DNA from: Salpingoeca rosetta
Lineage: Eukaryota > Protista > Choanoflagellata
Reading direction: 5' to 3'
DNA length: 64,000 nt
Assembly (NCBI GenBank): GCA_033442325.1
Contig: JAWQFM010000004.1
Span: forward strand, 903,187-967,186
Part shown: in pieces, positions 37,748-45,681 of the stretch
How positions within the stretch are numbered: position 1 is the stretch's first letter
Layout of the letters: every line of letters starts with the position of its first letter
The notes under the pieces: model-generated
Databases searched by the model: none
Seen by the model: only the letters and a program-made list of their open reading frames with translations
Told to the model about the DNA's origin: nothing
Made by a program: the position numbers and the translations under genes

Positions 37748-38616
37748 ATGCCAGCATCGCCAGCCTTCTGCTTGGTGCTGTTGGTGTTGCTACTCGTCAC
37801 CTTCCTCTTCAACACCGGCGCGCAAGAGCACTCAGAAGACCCAAACAATGCATCCATCTACATTGACGAGGCTGGTCACATGGTGTTTGAGGACAGTGAG
37901 GGGCAGGTGTCGCTGAAGGACCTGCTGCAGGCACTGGGAACACTTCAACAGAGCGTGTCCACGCTGCAGAACGACAACGCTGGGTTGAGAAACCAAAACA
38001 GCCAGCTGGAGGCTCGGTTGATGACTGTGGAAGAACAGCAGCAGCAGCAGCAGCAGCCAGAGCCATGCATTGCCTTCACGGCAAAGACGGCCATGACAAC
38101 ACCTGGCACGTTCAATGTTTCTCTGTCTTTCACGCAAGGCACCAACCTCCCACGCAACGTGTCTCTCTACATCGAAGTCGGTGGTGGAGGCGGGGCGGGT
38201 GCTTCGGCGGGCTGTTCCACCTACAACCAAGCCGGCGCATCCACCTCATTGGTGCAGCCCTCGGCAGCCACGACATGGCTATCCGCAACCGGTGGAGACG
38301 CCGGCAAGTACACAGCCGCGTTCGGTGTTGGCCATGGCTATGGCGACGAAGGACCAATTCGCATGGTTGGACGCGGCGGCGATGGTGGCGGTGGCAGCAG
38401 CTACATGGACTACACCAGCCATAATGGTGGAAACGGCGGCTACGCAGCCGGCGTGTTTCAAGTGGACTCCGCCTGGTCACGCATCTCGAGGCTGTTGTTG
38501 GAATAGGTGGCGATAGTGGCAGCGGATGCTCGTATCGCGGCCGCAAAGGATCGGACGGTTTTATCATCTTTCACCATCCAGCCCACCTGAACATCACCAT
38601 CACCACGCCTTCGTAA
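37748..38616 (+). CDS. Secreted coiled-coil + glycine-rich domain protein, probable frameshift near 38485
   Basis: Signal 'FCLVLLVLLLVTFLF', 'SIYIDEAGHMVF', coiled coil, 'VGGGGGAG..ATGGDAG..GGNGGYAAG'. The Gly-rich pattern continues in another frame as 'VVGIGGDSG..GRKGSDGFII'. Confidence 0.65.
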
Positions 38617-38627
38617 CAAGGCACGCT

Positions 38628-38718
<91 letters not shown>

Positions 38719-39031
38719 CGCGCGCTCACTTCGTCCTTTCGTCACGTCTGTGTCATCGTCATGAACTTTTCACGACATGTCATGTCACATCACAATCAAG
38801 GCCTACTTTCGGACAGCACAAATTATGTATGTCCATGAACCTTTTCGGGGTGATCTCACCATTTATTGCTATGCGGAGTCACTGGTGCAACTTTCGTCCA
38901 TGTCACACGCAGACACACCAAACATCAAACACGCAGCAGGCCGCCAGATCAAATACAAACAAAAGCACGCCCTTCCGCGCCCCCAGGTCCATTCACAGCC
39001 GAAGCGCAGCTCAGTCAGCAGAGACAGCACT

Positions 39032-40410
39032 ATGAGTGAGGCGGCATCCTCCTTTGGTCTCGACACCAATCAACTGCGACAAAACCTTACTCCGTGGAGC
39101 GACAGCGCTTGGAGACACCGATCTGACGACGTTCATGACGACACACCAACCCAAACACTTTTTGAGAGAAGGGGCCATGGAGAGACATGGTCTGTGCCAG
39201 ACAGAGAGTCCATTGTGGTTGAAGGCGATGACTCTGTTGTGGTTGAGCGCTGCGCTCAGACATGCCAAGGTGAGACTTGTTGAAAACTTCATCGGCTTGT
39301 GTGAACGCAGGTGCTGATGCATGGGCACAGCACATGTTCACATTGCAACATTGTTGATATGGACCGTAGGACTGTTGTCTGCTTGATTGATCATTGTCTC
39401 ATGACACTGCTTTCTTGCATGGTCAAGTGTATTCATGTGAGGACACGCGATTGCATGCACCTCGCCCCGATCTCACCAAACAGAAGGTGTGTGCGGTGTG
39501 TGTGTATGTGTGTGTGTGTGCGTGTTTGTGTGTGTGTGTGTCTGCTGTGCGAGTGTGCGTTGGCGCGTATGTGTGTGAGTGAGTGTGTACGGTCCATCCG
39601 TCCTTGTGTCTCAATGTTGTGTGTTTGACAATTGCTAAGGCATCCTCCGTGAATACCTCTTCCTCACTGGTTTGCAACTGTGTGTCAGCTGACAACAACA
39701 ACGCGTGAGCTGGTCGAGCTTCGCCAACCCCTACAGGCTGCGCGCACAGGCTTCATGCTTGTGGGTGGGGGACATTCCGGCAAGACGACCACTCTCCACT
39801 CCCTAATGGGTGACGACTTCAGGGAGGACAAAGCTCGCGTCATTGGCACCGACAAGCTGGATCGTTCTGTCGTCGTGACATCCATGGACATCTGCAACTG
39901 GCAGGTGTGTGCGTGCGTGTGTGTGTGTGTCTATTGTGATCGCAGCTTGTCACTTACTGGAGGGCAAGTATCTTTTCCAAGCTCACATGTGCACCTGGAT
40001 TCCACCATGTCACAACAGCCCCTGACGCACGACATCAGTGAATTCGTGCGCACGCTGTCGTACACGGCCCTGCAGAGGACGATTGACCAGCAGCAACAGC
40101 TCAAGGAACAGGTGCAACCTGCAGAAGGCCATGGCATGCAAGACGACAAGCCCCGCCCCTCCTTCTCCTTGTCGCTCAAGCATGAGCGGTCTCATCACAC
40201 ATCTACGACACAAGCCAGCAGGTGTTGCCCCACTGCCTCCACCGAGGAGATTGAGAAGGCAATCAAGGGCATGAACATTTATCTGCCCATCGAGGCAAGC
40301 AAGCCTGGGGTCACCTTCAAAGTGTTTGACCTGGGAGGCCAGTCCACCTTCCACATCTTCTACCCGTTCTTCTTCACCAAGTGAGTGGGATGTATTTGCA
40401 TGTGCGTGTG

Positions 40411-40491
<81 letters not shown>

Positions 40492-43456
40492 GACCACCGC
40501 TCCCCCGCACCACCGCAATTGCCTTCACCCCACACCCTCCTCACTCCACACCACTCCCACAACAGGTACGCGGTGTACCTGCTGGTGTTTTCCATGGAGG
40601 ACCTGCTGCACCAAGACGAGAGCAAGCGAGCAGAGGCGTGGGAGTTTATGGAGCACTGGTTGTCTTCCCTCCACCTTCACGCGAAGGGCGCACCCATCCT
40701 CATCGTCGGCACCTTCGCTGACAAGATCAACGAGCGGAAGCAGCACGAGGGCATCTCACGTGACATTTACAGTCGCCTGCGCCACAATCCCGCTTTCCCT
40801 GGCGTCATCCACAATGACAAGCACGGGCTGTGGTTCTGGCCCGTTGACAACACCAAGTCCATCCGTGACCCCATGATCCAGGACCTGCGCCAGACCATCT
40901 CCTCCACAGCACTGGCGCAGGAGTACGTGAGCCAGGAGGTGGCTGTGCCGTACCTCCACCTCTACGACAAGCTCAACGCCATTGCCCGCGACGAGAAGCG
41001 GCCGCTGCTCACGTTTGATGAGGTGGTGCAGATTGCACGCACATGTGGGCTGCCCACATGCGAGGAGACGAGAGCCTGCCTCCAGTTCCTGCACCTGTAC
41101 TCCATGGTGCTGTACTACGACCACGTGCCAGGCATGGAAGACTATGTGATCCTGAGTCCACAGTGGGCGGTGGACACAATGACGCGCGTCATCCGCAACT
41201 TCGACCTGCACCGCGATGTGCGGGATGGCGAGGCGAGGGCCGTTGGCGCGCAGGTGTGGGACGACCTCGTTGACCGCGGCATCCTGCACCGTCGCCTGCT
41301 TGATGTTCTATGGAAGGAGTTGGGAGGTGACATGATTGAGCCTTTCATTTGCCTCATGAAACATTACGGCCTGTGCATGGAGTACACAACACCAACGGTG
41401 CAACTACCCAGTCATCAACAGCAACATCAACACCACCAACAGTACCTGGTTCCTGCCGTTCTGCCAATGACGATTCGCCACAACACCAGCACGGTGGCGT
41501 CCGTGTCACTGAGCACGACGGCAGCACAGCAGGTCAACCCATATGTTGGTTATGAGGAGAAGACGGCGTTTATCGCCTTCAGCCTGAAACCATTCAAGCG
41601 AAGTGCGAGCGTGCGAGTTGAAGATGCGCAGCAAGCGTCATTCCTGCCAGAGGCTTTGTTCACCGTTGTACTGGCCCATGTGATGGCGCATGCACAGCAC
41701 GGTGCATCGCAGGCGCCCAAGCTGAGTCGCACCCATGCCATCTGCTTCATGGAGTCGACCAAGCTGGAGCTGCAGCTAGTGCCGGCTGTTGGCGGCATCA
41801 AGATGAAGATCACGAGTGCACAGCCGCGCGCCATGCTGCACATGCTGCACACCATGATCAGCGAGGCCGCCAGAGAGCGCTACCCGGAGCTAAAGAGCAG
41901 CCTGTTGGTGCCATTCGACGCCAAGACGCTGCTGTTCTTCGAGGATGTGCTGCACCACCACAAGAGCAAGCAGGACATGTGGGTGCACGAACAGCTCCTG
42001 TCACCCGATGACCTGATCACCAAGTATGACCCTCTCCTGCCCGTTCTCGGCCTGCAGGACAAGTACGACGTCTTCATCAGCTACAGGTACGCTCTGCGGT
42101 TTGTTGTGCTGACACTGCAAATGTTTTGCAGCACCTTGACGCAAATGATGCGTCCGCTTCCTCGTTCAGACTTACCCTTCCTCAATGCTTGAACACTCCT
42201 TCAGGCTCGAAGAGGTCTTCGCTCTCTTGTCAGCAATCGCCAACTTGCAAGGCGCACAGAATCGGCTCAAAGTGCGCGCAGATGCGTGCGACATACTTCC
42301 GACGCCATTGCTGCGACGCACGACCCTGAACGCGTTGGCCCAAAGCACCGTCGTTTGTCCCGTCATATCTGTCTCATCGATCGAACAGATTGTGAAGGAC
42401 TGTCATGACGGCAAACCGAGTGAGCTCCTGCTCGAGTGGACAGCTATTCTTAGTATGAAGGATCTCGTCCGCGGCGACGACAGCGCAGCTGCGCAGAAGC
42501 TACGCCTGCGAACCGTCATTCCAATTATCGTGGCAGCCCCATCTCACCGGAGCGATGATGCCGCCGTGCCAGCCTCACATGAAATCGTGGTTGTGATGCA
42601 GCGGGCCGCAGCGCAGTTGCCGGACACTTCTCATGACCCAACAATGACCACGCTTACTTCGGAATGGAATGTGGGCGTTCAGCTGCCATCGAACCTGCCG
42701 ACACCGCACGTGGTCGTTACAGAGTTGATGGGGAGGGCCGAGGCTGCCGCTGTACCGGTGCTTCAGTCACAACATGACGACTTCGCCACCAACATCGAAC
42801 GATACCTTCTCATTATCATGGACTCTGTACAGGAGCACGGACAATCTGTACACACACGACCAGAAAGTGCAAAGCAACTGCGACAAAAGGCAAAACAATT
42901 GTTCAACCAAACTTACCGACTGCTATGGGGCTTGTCACGGAAGGATCGCGTATTTCTGGCTCAGGAGTGCGACATTGATGCACCCGTGGACATGACGATT
43001 CAGGACCTCATTCGTGGCCTCACAGACACAGTACCTGAAGATGACCCGCTTGGCCTGCCTTTCTTCCATGCGGACAGCCGCCTTAAATGTTTGCTGGAGT
43101 GCGCTGAACGTAGCCTGGGTCCAGACAAGGAAGTGTGCACACGGATTCGTCAACGGCAACAGATCCTGGCACAACTGGATGGACAAGCAGGCTCATCTTC
43201 GGCCGAGGACCAGTCTGCTCATGGCTTGCCTGGTTTTGTTCCGAGAGTTCCATTGCTGTCCTGCTTCCTGCTTCTTGCGCTGTTCTTTGTCTTTGGTTAC
43301 GGTGCGTTCTTCGCATCACTCAGTGTCAGTGTCAGTGACTTGTGTGCATGGCTTCTGCACTGGATCGGCCTTGTTTGAGCAATACAGCTTGTGTTTCTCG
43401 TTTCATAAATGGCAGTGGTCATGTCACTCACAGAAGCATTTCGTGCAAAGGAGTAA
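39032..43456 (+). CDS. ROCO-family protein: Roc GTPase - COR - TIR - X domain - C-terminal TM (~1177 aa). Exons 39032-39269, 39428-39486, 39689-39904, 40019-40380, 40566-42086, 42205-43301, 43416-43456
   Basis: P-loop 'MLVGGGHSGKTT', G3 'FDLGGQ', G4 'LIVGTFAD'. COR 'VILSPQW', 'GIL', 'YLVPAVLP', 'FLPEALF'. TIR 'YDVFISYR|..ALAQSTVVCPVIS..LLLEW..VIPIIV'. Exons join in frame through GT-AG sites (3534 nt). The first two exons and the last exon are less certain; unspliced, the stop is at 43378. Confidence 0.82.
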
Positions 43457-43629
43457 ACTGTTTCCAATAAAGGCAATAATTTCCTTCGACGAAAGGGGAA
43501 AGGAGGTGGTGTTCTTGAAAGAACCTTGAGGAATTTTGTGCGAGGTTTCGTGTGAGGATGCACTTCACAAGCAGAAGCACTTCATTTTCTGCATGTATGT
43601 TGTTCACTGTCACTGACCCAACATCCAAC

Positions 43630-45681
43630 ATGCCGACAAGACGGGAGATTAACTCTGCGTTTGCCAAAATCAAAGGCGAACTGTGGGACCTATCACCTGG
43701 TGACATTGTCAAGCTGGCATCGGCTTGTGGTTTCAGGGGCAGAAATCTTTCTGGACCAGATCTTATCTACAAGCTTGAGTCCCATGTGCCCGAGAATGAG
43801 TCATATCCGTACCTCAGTCCCAAAAGCACCATGCAAACTCTTCTGGAGATTGCTCAGGATTCGTTGGGTGTGGAAGGCGCTGAGCCCCGGCTTTGTCTTC
43901 TTTTGATTCGGTGGCAGGAGGTGTCTGGCCTTCGACCACAACCCCGTGCTGAACCTGAAGTCGTTGTCAATCCCCCACGCCTTGAGCCACGGCAACCCGC
44001 AGCACACCAACCTCCTCAGGCAGCATCGGCGGAGGTTCCACCACAGCCCCAAAGACAGTAAGTCACTTTCGATTCAAATGCTGCTGTCATGCATTGTGGT
44101 GTTCCGGTCCTTGTGCCACACTCATCGTGCTGTGCGTAATGTTGCTGTTTCAGAGTTGTGGAACAAGCCGAGGAAGACACCAGCCAGACCAGTCCTCTGC
44201 ACACCGCTCCACCACAGCAGTTGTTGGAGTTTATCGAGAACGAAATTGTCAACCTCGAATCACAAGACAGGGCGAAGCTTGCCAATGAATGCAGACTGGA
44301 CAGCACCTTGAAACCAGCGGAGCTGGTGCACAAGCTGAAAACAACACGAATTGGACGATATCCAATCCTCAGCGGTGATGGCGACATGGATCCACTTTTG
44401 GCAGCTGTGGAACGCGCCCTGCCCCGAGATCACTTGCTGGAGAAGCTGATTCAGCTGTGGCAAGTTGCTGCAGACAAGAAACCTGGCGATCGAGACGAAC
44501 TGGCAACTGCGCTGCTAACACAATTCTGTCCCTTCCAAGTGCCTGCTGAAACAGCTCCACCGTAAGCCGCTCTCCATTGCTGTTAGACTCAAAATTACTT
44601 GACTTTTGCGCTGTTCCTTGTTCATCCATTCGCAACACGACTGCTTTTACCCACCCTCACGGCCACCACTTGTACGCGCTTCGTTCCTTGTCAACATAAC
44701 AGGGTTGTGATCGTTTGTGCCAAGCCATACGAGTTTGAAGCCATGAACCGCGCACTTGCTCGTTTGGCGGACGTTCGCCGGCACCCGTCTTCAATTGGCC
44801 ATAACTTTGAGAGTGGTTACCGCGGCGAGGAGCGTCTGCCATTCAATCGCTACGATTTCATCATGAGGAAGCGCGGGAAATCGATTCCCATCACTGTGTC
44901 GCGGTTCACTGCAAAGCTGCAAGGTCCAGTTGAGTGCGGCATCCATGCAGGCCAGGTCATCACCACGCTCAAGCCGTCGCACATGGGCATGATTGGCGTC
45001 TGTGGCGGTCATCGCCTCGGAGACATCATCATCGCCACCGAAGCCAAGGACGCTCGTGCCGGGCGCATGGTCATCTCCGCGGACGACGCTCTTGAAAGCG
45101 TGGACCCCGTCGCCTACGACCCAGACTTTCAGGGCTACTTGCAGCGATATGTGTTCAAGCGAGCCAAGCGCCATGAAGTCACGTCCACCTGGACCGGGTC
45201 GGGTGTGGTGGCTGACCACCTGGCGAACACATTCCATCCAACCTCGAGTGCCAACGTACACAAAGAGTCAGTGCTTCACACATACCCTCAGGTGCGTGAG
45301 GACTGCGCGGGACTTGTTCAACTGGACGAAGGCTTGGACATGGAGGCATTCCCGTTCTTCAAGGCCATTCATATGGCAAACGACTCCAAAGCGTACGACA
45401 TTACCGCGCTTCCGGTGATGAAGGCGGTGAGCGACACCAGTGTGCTAGCCCTTGGTGAAGGCAGTGACGCAGCTTTGCAAGAGAGGCAGGACACCAACGA
45501 CTCTGTGTTCTGCCAGGCGCTTGGTTTGGATCTCGCAGAGTTCAAGAGGCAAAAGCAAACGGCCCAGCAAGACCCCAAGCTGCACGAGAAGCGTCGCAGG
45601 CGCTTCCGAACCATTGCCGCCGCTAAGGCCGCCGCCGTCATGGCCGATTTCCTCGACCAGGCCCCATTCCTTCGGAAGTGA
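43630..45681 (+). CDS. X-X-PNP protein: two DED-like helical domains plus a PNP_UDP_1/Pfs-type nucleosidase (604 aa). Exons 43630-44057, 44154-44561, 44703-45681
   Basis: Two GTAAG...AG phase-2 introns join three ORFs in frame (1815 nt). PNP motifs 'VIVCAKPYEFEAM', 'GPVECG', 'MIGVCGG..LGDIII', 'GLDMEA', 'VMKAVSD' and 'AAAKAAAV'. Confidence 0.85.

Follow-up and report, generated by a model that had tools for sequence, protein, structure and literature searches.

Contig 4 of the 55.4-Mb assembly of the choanoflagellate Salpingoeca rosetta carries two co-oriented genes, here called A and B, which raise the question of whether a ROCO GTPase and a nucleosidase encoded side by side act together and, if so, by what they are joined. 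The window analysed is a stretch of 64,000 nucleotides (contig 4, positions 903187-967186); positions are those of the window unless another contig is named, and the whole assembly was searched for related loci. Gene A encodes, in this order, Roc, COR, a TIR-like domain, a domain called X and a hydrophobic tail; gene B encodes two copies of X followed by a PNP domain. On balance we lean towards reading A and B as separate genes that form one signalling-effector module held together by X, a lineage-specific adaptor with a predicted death fold. An initial annotation of the window had proposed the same domain order for both genes, and it is borne out by Pfam matches to Roc, COR-A and PNP_UDP_1. 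The features of the two genes, including the death effector domain (DED)-like copies of X, are as follows (aa, amino acids).

39032..43378, + strand: gene A, six exons, 1189 aa; 5' part of the public fused model PTSG_02681 (P0001)
39707..40725, + strand: Roc GTPase domain, aa ~106-345, exons 3-5 (Pfam Roc)
40726..42030, + strand: COR domain, aa ~346-780, in exon 5 directly after Roc
42046..42553, + strand: divergent TIR-like domain, aa ~785-915, split by the intron 42087-42204 just past the YDVFISYR strand
42869..43177, + strand: X(A), predicted death-fold (DED-like) domain, aa 1021-1123
43226..43336, + strand: C-terminal hydrophobic tail of A, aa 1140-1176, probable tail-anchor transmembrane segment
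43466..43471, + strand: AATAAA polyadenylation signal between A and B, read from the sequence
43630..45681, + strand: gene B, three predicted exons (43630-44057, 44154-44561, 44703-45681), 604 aa, in-frame GT..AG introns
43630..43935, + strand: X1(B), predicted death-fold (DED-like) domain, aa 1-102, the copy used for the structure model
44191..44481, + strand: X2(B), second predicted death-fold domain, aa 156-252
44704..45456, + strand: PNP_UDP-fold nucleosidase domain, aa 280-530, with the motifs QGP, GMIGVCGG, DME (E493) and VSD (D523)
45457..45678, + strand: C-terminal helical tail of B, aa 531-604 (model helices 255-319), with conservation across all paralogs and a metagenomic relative

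Domain X and the genes that carry it

The three X copies of the window, each of about 100 aa, are 26-30% identical to one another and match the family profile at E 1e-30 to 1e-34 (X(A): 1.6e-32, X2(B): 3.8e-30); the common domain that the initial annotation saw in A and B is thus real. X1(B) and X2(B) are separated by a Pro/Gln-rich linker of ~55 aa. Both the profile and an AlphaFold2 (AF2) model of X1(B) were built on 11 aligned X copies. The model (pLDDT 87.2, pTM 0.77) has five helices as assigned by DSSP, and a loop in place of death-fold helix 3. Based on exhaustive structural alignment against 48,161 PDB representative chains (VIA-align), its best match is the DED of PEA-15 (Z 9.3, root-mean-square deviation 2.4, 82 of 90 residues), followed by the DEDs of caspase-8 (Z 8.5), MC159 (8.5) and FADD (7.5). 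DEDs occupy ranks 1-9, with death domains, pyrin domains and CARDs coming after them (Z 4.5-6.5), and about 40 of the 50 best matches are death-fold entries aligned over nearly the whole domain. Foldseek, which had been suggested as a check, also places the PEA-15 DED first, with a weak E value of 0.38. No convincing match to X came from the atlas or the viral structure libraries (a herpesvirus vFLIP stands at rank 8), and a search of the language-model atlas gave nothing useful. From the predicted structure we conclude that X is a death fold, nearest in shape to the DEDs. Membership of X in the DED family proper was considered and not adopted, because X has neither a sequence-profile link to that family nor the RxDL motif.

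Concerning its distribution, the X profile finds about 15 loci in this genome. Among 1.84 billion representative proteins, EukProt entries included, it finds only S. rosetta proteins and repeat-protein noise. X is C-terminal on Roc-COR-TIR proteins (gene A and PTSG_09165) and on LRR-Roc-COR proteins (PTSG_05954, and PTSG_06832 with a near-copy). It is N-terminal on the NACHT-like STAND ATPase PTSG_12916 (P0005; NPHP3_N 49.5 bits) and on PTSG_07399 (P0006, 1082 aa), a Rad50/SbcC-like (SMC-like) coiled-coil ABC ATPase with a weak AAA_23 match. In tandem it precedes the PNP domain in gene B and PTSG_05953, and it is also found in short proteins. These placements are the positions held by death-fold domains in NLRs, DAPK1 and caspase-8. 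The spread over NTPases and a PNP protein is the pattern of an adaptor common to sensors and effector, and corresponds to the criterion by which Kaur et al. recognise effector-associated adaptors (PMC7159879, PMC8195603).

Two of the carriers deserve a separate description. PTSG_12916 (C31:339961-343634, minus strand) also has a TANC1-type winged helix, and so presents an NLR-like layout in a choanoflagellate. PTSG_07399 is another candidate sensor bearing the same adaptor.

The genome contains four PNP loci of the type of gene B, and all four have a ROCO-X gene within a few kilobases:

Window, genes A and B, +/+: tandem, 251 bp apart
Contig 15, PTSG_05953 (- strand) and PTSG_05954 (+ strand): head to head, start codons at 726396 and 726893, 497 bp apart
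Contig 18, ~585-596 kb: PTSG_06832 (- strand), a free X1-like open reading frame at 588454-588738 (+ strand) and the PNP gene PTSG_06833 (+ strand) at 595546
Contig 18, ~495-501 kb: partial PNP gene (- strand) and ROCO-X gene (+ strand)

The X1-like reading frame on contig 18 begins with Met, and ~6.8 kb separate it from the PNP exon downstream. A long CT/GA microsatellite comes after it. It represents either a remnant or a first exon that is missing from the annotated PNP gene.

The ROCO partners are of two lineages, as the Roc-COR region of A can barely be aligned with that of PTSG_05954 (E 0.008). In the X tree, the X1 copies, the X2 copies and the X copies of ROCO-TIR proteins form separate clades. 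X2(B) and the X2 of PTSG_05953 form a clade with support 97/96, and the X of A groups with that of PTSG_09165, not with the X domains of B. It follows that the pairing did not arise by local duplication of X, that X-X-PNP is an old architecture and that the X of A is not derived from B. The presence of two ROCO lineages beside PNP effectors argues for functional coupling rather than accident, and the idea of a functional pair, first put forward for A and B alone, is strengthened by its recurrence at 4/4 loci.

A looser arrangement can be envisaged, which we think rather unlikely: X would be an adaptor, and A and B would not be a dedicated pair. B and its paralogs would then form an effector pool for any X-bearing NTPase, or A would signal through its TIR-like domain and use X for autoinhibition or self-assembly at the membrane; the adjacency would be an ancestral relic. 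The numbers fit such a pool, since at least seven X-bearing NTPase genes face three or four X-PNP effectors, and no PNP gene lies next to PTSG_09165, the closest relative of A. The X tree gives no hint that X copies of one locus are matched as cognates, and the two contig-18 loci are recent duplicates. Nevertheless, adjacency has been kept at 4/4 PNP loci despite only ~50% identity of the PNP domains, a changed orientation and two ROCO lineages, and one pair is laid out as a 497-bp bidirectional promoter. These features speak for A and B as partners in one module.

The PNP domain of B and the Roc, COR and TIR-like domains of A

Gene B matches Pfam PNP_UDP_1 at 30.6 bits (cutoff 25.1). A Foldseek search with the AF2 model of the domain, another of the suggested checks, confirms the fold: PNP and MTAN structures are returned at E ~1e-9 (best 9e-10). 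VIA-align gives Z 17.5 over ~208 residues, with MTAN and futalosine hydrolase, of the hydrolytic branch of the fold, as best matches. By shape the domain is equally near to clusters with Cap17-like_N, receiver and EAD1 domains and to plain MTAN-like ones (TM 0.54-0.56). Four PNP sequences, 33-54% identical, share invariant columns that include QGP, GMIGVCGG, DME and SD; we take these motifs to correspond, in E. coli MTAN, to the sugar-binding loop and to Glu174 and Asp197. A word-index search with the PNP domain returned only S. rosetta paralogs and one metagenomic protein, and a PDB sequence search with it gave no matches. Outside S. rosetta no other relative of the subfamily was found than this metagenomic protein (P0015, 395 aa, from a 1396-bp contig of a JGI metagenome), which is 33% identical to the PNP domain of B. 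Its N-terminal ~100 aa have no X-profile match and might be another adaptor domain.

Could the enzyme be an ordinary metabolic one? The initial annotation had named a housekeeping identity as a result that would speak against its proposal; no housekeeping NCBIfam model matches the PNP domain of B, and its best profile match is the PADLOC defence-candidate model PDC-M60C (E 5e-10). We hold it improbable that the system has no role in defence or cell death and that the PNP is a regulated enzyme of nucleoside or nucleotide salvage or signalling, under ROCO control during life-history transitions. Such a role would agree with the nearest solved folds, which are metabolic MTANs, with expression that varies with condition, and with the lack of functional evidence for immunity. 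Apart from the profile matches, it has against it the lineage-specific expansion, the modular shuffling and the association with TIR, NACHT-like and death-fold domains, which are typical of conflict systems.

In gene A, Roc scores 45.7 bits on the spliced protein (Pfam cutoff 27) and 30.8 bits when the exon piece alone is searched, with the P-loop GGGHSGKT and the switch II motif DLGGQ separated by an insert of ~95 aa. COR-A is matched at 64.2 bits (cutoff 35.3) and COR-B weakly, at 13.8 bits. The sequence KYDVFISYR after COR is a typical TIR first strand, broken by the intron at 42087. The TIR_2 score of gene A (15.4 bits, E 0.027) lies below the Pfam cutoff of 28; that of the paralog PTSG_09165 (P0007), 34% identical over the TIR region, is 29.5 bits and lies above it. 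A PDB profile search with the TIR-like region of A is weak, with bacterial TIR chains in the lead (E 0.2-0.9). Its language-model neighbours, which serve as a lead only, are without exception TIR clusters, one of them a bacterial COR-B/TIR cluster. In the family alignment Glu876 aligns with the Glu of DNVLLEW, conserved in 19 of 20 paralogs; going by the SARM1 motif, we assign the NADase glutamate to this column. At the position of the BB-loop Gly, gene A has another residue. Gene A is probably tail-anchored, because the only stretch with a Kyte-Doolittle hydropathy of at least 1.6 over 19 residues (aa 1140-1176) is C-terminal.

Exon 5, which encodes much of Roc-COR (40566-42086), recurs in the genome as at least 40 paralogous copies with 70-88% nucleotide identity, and 37 TIR-like loci are found. 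All 22 annotated relatives retrieved are S. rosetta proteins, mostly Ank/LRR-Roc-COR-TIR_2, and judged by these sequences the ROCO-TIR genes (~40) are a large lineage-specific expansion.

Gene models and transcripts

Four public sequencing runs were compared with positions 39001-45000 of the window. Run X4 is RNA, since it contains spliced contigs; run X1, with an unspliced contig of flat depth, is genomic DNA. The exons of gene A are 39032-39269, 39428-39486, 39689-39904, 40019-40380, 40566-42086 and 42205-43378, their borders having been set after allowing for ambiguous bases at the contig joints. The spliced model gives a coding sequence of 3570 nt (1189 aa), and all five introns are GT..AG. 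One contig of run X4 (depth 9) links 39001-39265, a 61-nt piece at 39424-39484, 39687-39897, 40016-40380 and then 40566 onward. In a second (depth 40.6), exon 5 is spliced at its end to 42205, from where the contig continues unbroken to 43420. The joints E1/E2, E4/E5 and E5/E6 are listed directly in the spliced contigs, and E2/E3 and E3/E4 come from the piece coordinates of the same contig as the other 5' joints. The 59-nt exon 2 was added to the model by these transcripts, and the reading frame is kept only with it. An alternative start of gene A is the in-frame ATG at 38900, within 38777-39031, which would add 44 residues. Raw reads of the deep RNA runs X14 and X15 are confined to the Roc-COR exon region (40337-42087), are 95-99% identical to the window and diverge at their ends. 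They were ruled out as transcripts of gene A, as they differ from the window and derive from paralogs.

Gene B has canonical in-frame splice sites as read from the sequence (GTAAG. donors, CAG acceptors), and its start Met aligns with the first Met of the stand-alone X-X-PNP protein PTSG_05953. Here too there is an alternative start, an in-frame ATG at 43558 (within 43558-43629) that would add 24 residues. Its RNA consists of two short contigs of run X4 (depth ~3) in exons 1 and 3, and of one or two raw reads in X14 and X15. Of the two models proposed by the initial annotation, that of gene A is therefore upheld by spliced contigs, with the small exon added, and for that of gene B the RNA amounts to these low-depth contigs. 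The two intact co-oriented genes are where they had been placed: 251 bp separate the stop of A (43378) from the ATG of B (43630), and all nine exon frames are intact.

The public protein PTSG_02681 (1593 aa) is a fusion of A and B that starts at A residue 122. It lacks 39 aa of X(A), and its ...GYG is linked straight to ELWDL..., so that the stop of A and the first 16 residues of B are skipped; the first helices of both X(A) and X1(B) are thereby deleted. That A and B are one gene, with a Roc-COR-TIR-X-X-X-PNP product whose X copies act within one chain, appears doubtful to us, and we give it little credence. The annotation itself, the shared orientation and short distance, a usable GT donor (~43302) and AG acceptor (~43677), and the near lack of independent RNA for gene B would all allow it. 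Against this, the contig of run X4 is unspliced from 42202 to 43420, crossing the stop codon of A (43376-43378) and both introns needed by the fusion (donor ~43302), and because a transcript runs through this stop codon the fused model is disfavoured. Across the gap the depth of run X4 falls from 40.6 to 4 and then ~1 (roughly tenfold), an AATAAA lies at 43466, the fusion truncates both X(A), by 39 aa, and X1(B), which loses its first helix, and PTSG_05953 begins with Met at the homologous position. A single fused transcript had been foreseen as a result contrary to the module, and the evidence speaks instead for two genes. Two genes is the better-supported reading, which leaves room for a minor fused isoform. 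It is very improbable that X is a lineage-specific helical bundle resembling the death fold by chance, in genes that may be decaying family members without joint function: the missing sequence-level link to death-fold families, the Foldseek E of only 0.38 and the low expression would suit this, but ~40 of the 50 best of 48,161 chains are death-fold entries aligned at nearly full length, the nine exon frames are intact, the motifs expected to be catalytic are conserved, and X sits where death-fold domains sit in NLRs, DAPK1 and caspase-8.

Two further observations concern the surroundings of gene A. Long (GT)n/(CA)n microsatellites lie at 39486-39551, 39898-39939 and 40400-40496 (introns 2, 3 and 4) and upstream at 38571-38745, and read mapping is cut there. 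The upstream open reading frame 37748-38506 (+ strand, 252 aa) has no relation to the module; its start resembles a signal peptide, and it contains a poly-Gln tract and is rich in Gly in its C-terminal half.

Proposed mechanism and known systems

If A and B form one module, gene A would encode a ROCO GTPase switch that is anchored by its tail and carries a TIR-like domain and a single X, and gene B two X domains before an N-glycosidase of the PNP/MTAN fold. A might be triggered by the GTP state or dimerisation of Roc-COR, or by TIR-TIR contact with the ~40 sensor-bearing ROCO-TIR paralogs. The X of activated, membrane-bound A would then nucleate a homotypic X-X assembly with the tandem X of B. 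As X is a death-fold adaptor by its modelled structure, recruitment of this kind has known precedent. A complex prediction for X1(B), X2(B) and X(A) scored 0.00, which gives no verdict and is not evidence either way. The assembly would concentrate the PNP domains and switch the nucleosidase on. PNP-fold enzymes are oligomers with active sites at subunit interfaces, and for this reason concentration could activate them. By analogy with Cap17, DtcC and sponge DDAN, the PNP would cleave adenine nucleotides, most likely ATP and dATP, and the outcome would be growth arrest or death of the infected or stressed cell. The TIR-like domain of A may be a second, NAD-directed enzyme, and might then couple NAD+ to ATP depletion as the initial annotation had supposed, or else it may dock the sensor-bearing ROCO-TIR paralogs, so that A would act as a bridge in the manner of MyD88. 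The logic would be that of FADD and caspase-8, where the platform has one DED and the enzyme two in tandem, with a nucleosidase replacing the protease.

Several points weigh against this proposal. Concerning X, none of its 11 copies has a Pfam match at E up to 10, EAD and bDLD models included; a PDB sequence-profile search with X returned no death-fold chain; the DED-type RxDL motif is not seen by eye in the last helix of the 11-copy alignment; and a Z of ~9 falls in the range where small helical bundles match by arrangement alone. The AF2 model of the PNP domain of B is of medium quality (pLDDT 64.7, pTM 0.71), and the proposed substrate is taken by analogy from relatives. Gene A lacks the Ank/LRR region carried by its paralogs and is silent in the two deep RNA runs X14 and X15, where the paralogs are well expressed; gene B is barely expressed in the four runs, and its splicing is a prediction from the sequence. 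Since two of the four PNP loci, those of contig 18, are recent duplicates, there are about three independent lineages of such loci, which may descend from one ancestral pair.

The view of the initial annotation that the arrangement was undescribed is too strong, as there are several precedents. Death-domain-PNP proteins occur in the sponge Amphimedon queenslandica, an architecture first noted in PMC3879445, and in vitro the PNP domain of the sponge DDAN has nucleosidase activity on ATP and dATP (bioRxiv 10.1101/2023.01.24.525353). The Figure 4 legend of the same preprint names Roc, COR and LRR among the architectures that PNP homologs have in eukaryotes, and as far as this legend goes the ROCO-PNP combination has therefore been drawn before; it is perhaps the fused model PTSG_02681. 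Neither S. rosetta nor Roc was found in the available part of its supplement. Bacterial Death-like domains are fused to TIR or PNPase (PMC8195603), and for brown algae a role of ROCO proteins as immune receptors has been proposed (PMC11378527).

The closest animal likeness is the FADD/caspase-8 complex (DISC): a single DED-like domain on the platform, a tandem DED-like pair before the enzyme, and X with its best matches among the DEDs of PEA-15, caspase-8, MC159 and FADD. It differs in that the S. rosetta effector is a PNP-fold nucleosidase and not a protease, and the platform a ROCO-TIR protein; the X pair of B lies on a flexible linker of ~55 aa and is not packed, there is neither RxDL nor sequence similarity, and assembly here is a proposal. 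Sponge DDAN and the PNP-NLRs of corals and fungi share a death-fold adaptor fused to a PNP_UDP effector, the sponge being a close relative of the lineage studied. In contrast to DDAN, with which the comparison is of architecture and not of sequence, the S. rosetta adaptor is DED-like, tandem and invisible to Pfam, and its presumed partner is the adjacent ROCO. The bacterial Death-like/EAD systems (Kaur et al. 2020, 2021; PMC7159879, PMC8195603) likewise place one small adaptor on NTPase sensors and TIR/PNPase effectors in one locus, with lineage-specific expansion and variable flanks, whereas the S. rosetta module is eukaryotic and intron-containing, its NTPase is a ROCO GTPase and not a STAND/MoxR ATPase, and X has no Pfam EAD/bDLD match.

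DAPK1 has a death-fold domain after Roc-COR, and MyD88 has TIR and a death fold in one chain. Unlike them, A has no kinase or ankyrin region and carries a probable tail anchor; no orthology was detected, and in place of the IRAK kinases of MyD88 its presumed downstream partner is a nucleosidase. CBASS Cap17 and Detocs DtcC are also PNP-fold effectors of immune-type modules, to which B is likened by fold and not by phylogeny. B has neither the Cap17-like N-terminal domain nor a receiver domain, and its proposed activation is by death-fold assembly and not by cyclic nucleotide or phosphotransfer.

Four things appear to be new: that X, a domain of a choanoflagellate, has a death fold; that A and B are two genes; that ROCO-X and X-X-PNP genes recur as pairs; and that X extends over a wider network. 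A broader picture is conceivable, which we offer tentatively and as possible rather than probable: a cryptic but complete death-fold network, in which two ROCO lineages, a NACHT-like STAND protein and a Rad50-like ATPase would converge through DED-like X domains on a nucleosidase executioner. A would be a MyD88-like bridge, with TIR input from the ~40 Ank/LRR-ROCO-TIR paralogs and death-fold output from a membrane platform. The assembly of death-fold signalosomes would then be older than animals, or would have evolved in parallel in their sister group, and the destruction of nucleotides, not caspases, would be the original output.

For the annotation of S. rosetta, the public gene model PTSG_02681 is corrected and its blank regions are explained. 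The organism is genetically tractable, and the proposal is therefore directly testable. Comparative studies have reported no Death or CARD domain in any choanoflagellate (PMC6040629; PMC6792448), and a death-fold adaptor unseen by profile searches, of a type hitherto regarded as confined to animals, would change this picture of choanoflagellates as lacking death-fold domains. X on ROCO, NACHT-like and Rad50-like NTPases and on a nucleosidase would amount to a pre-animal, or parallel, case of adaptor-mediated recruitment of an executioner, and the finding thus bears on the origin of animal death-fold signalling.

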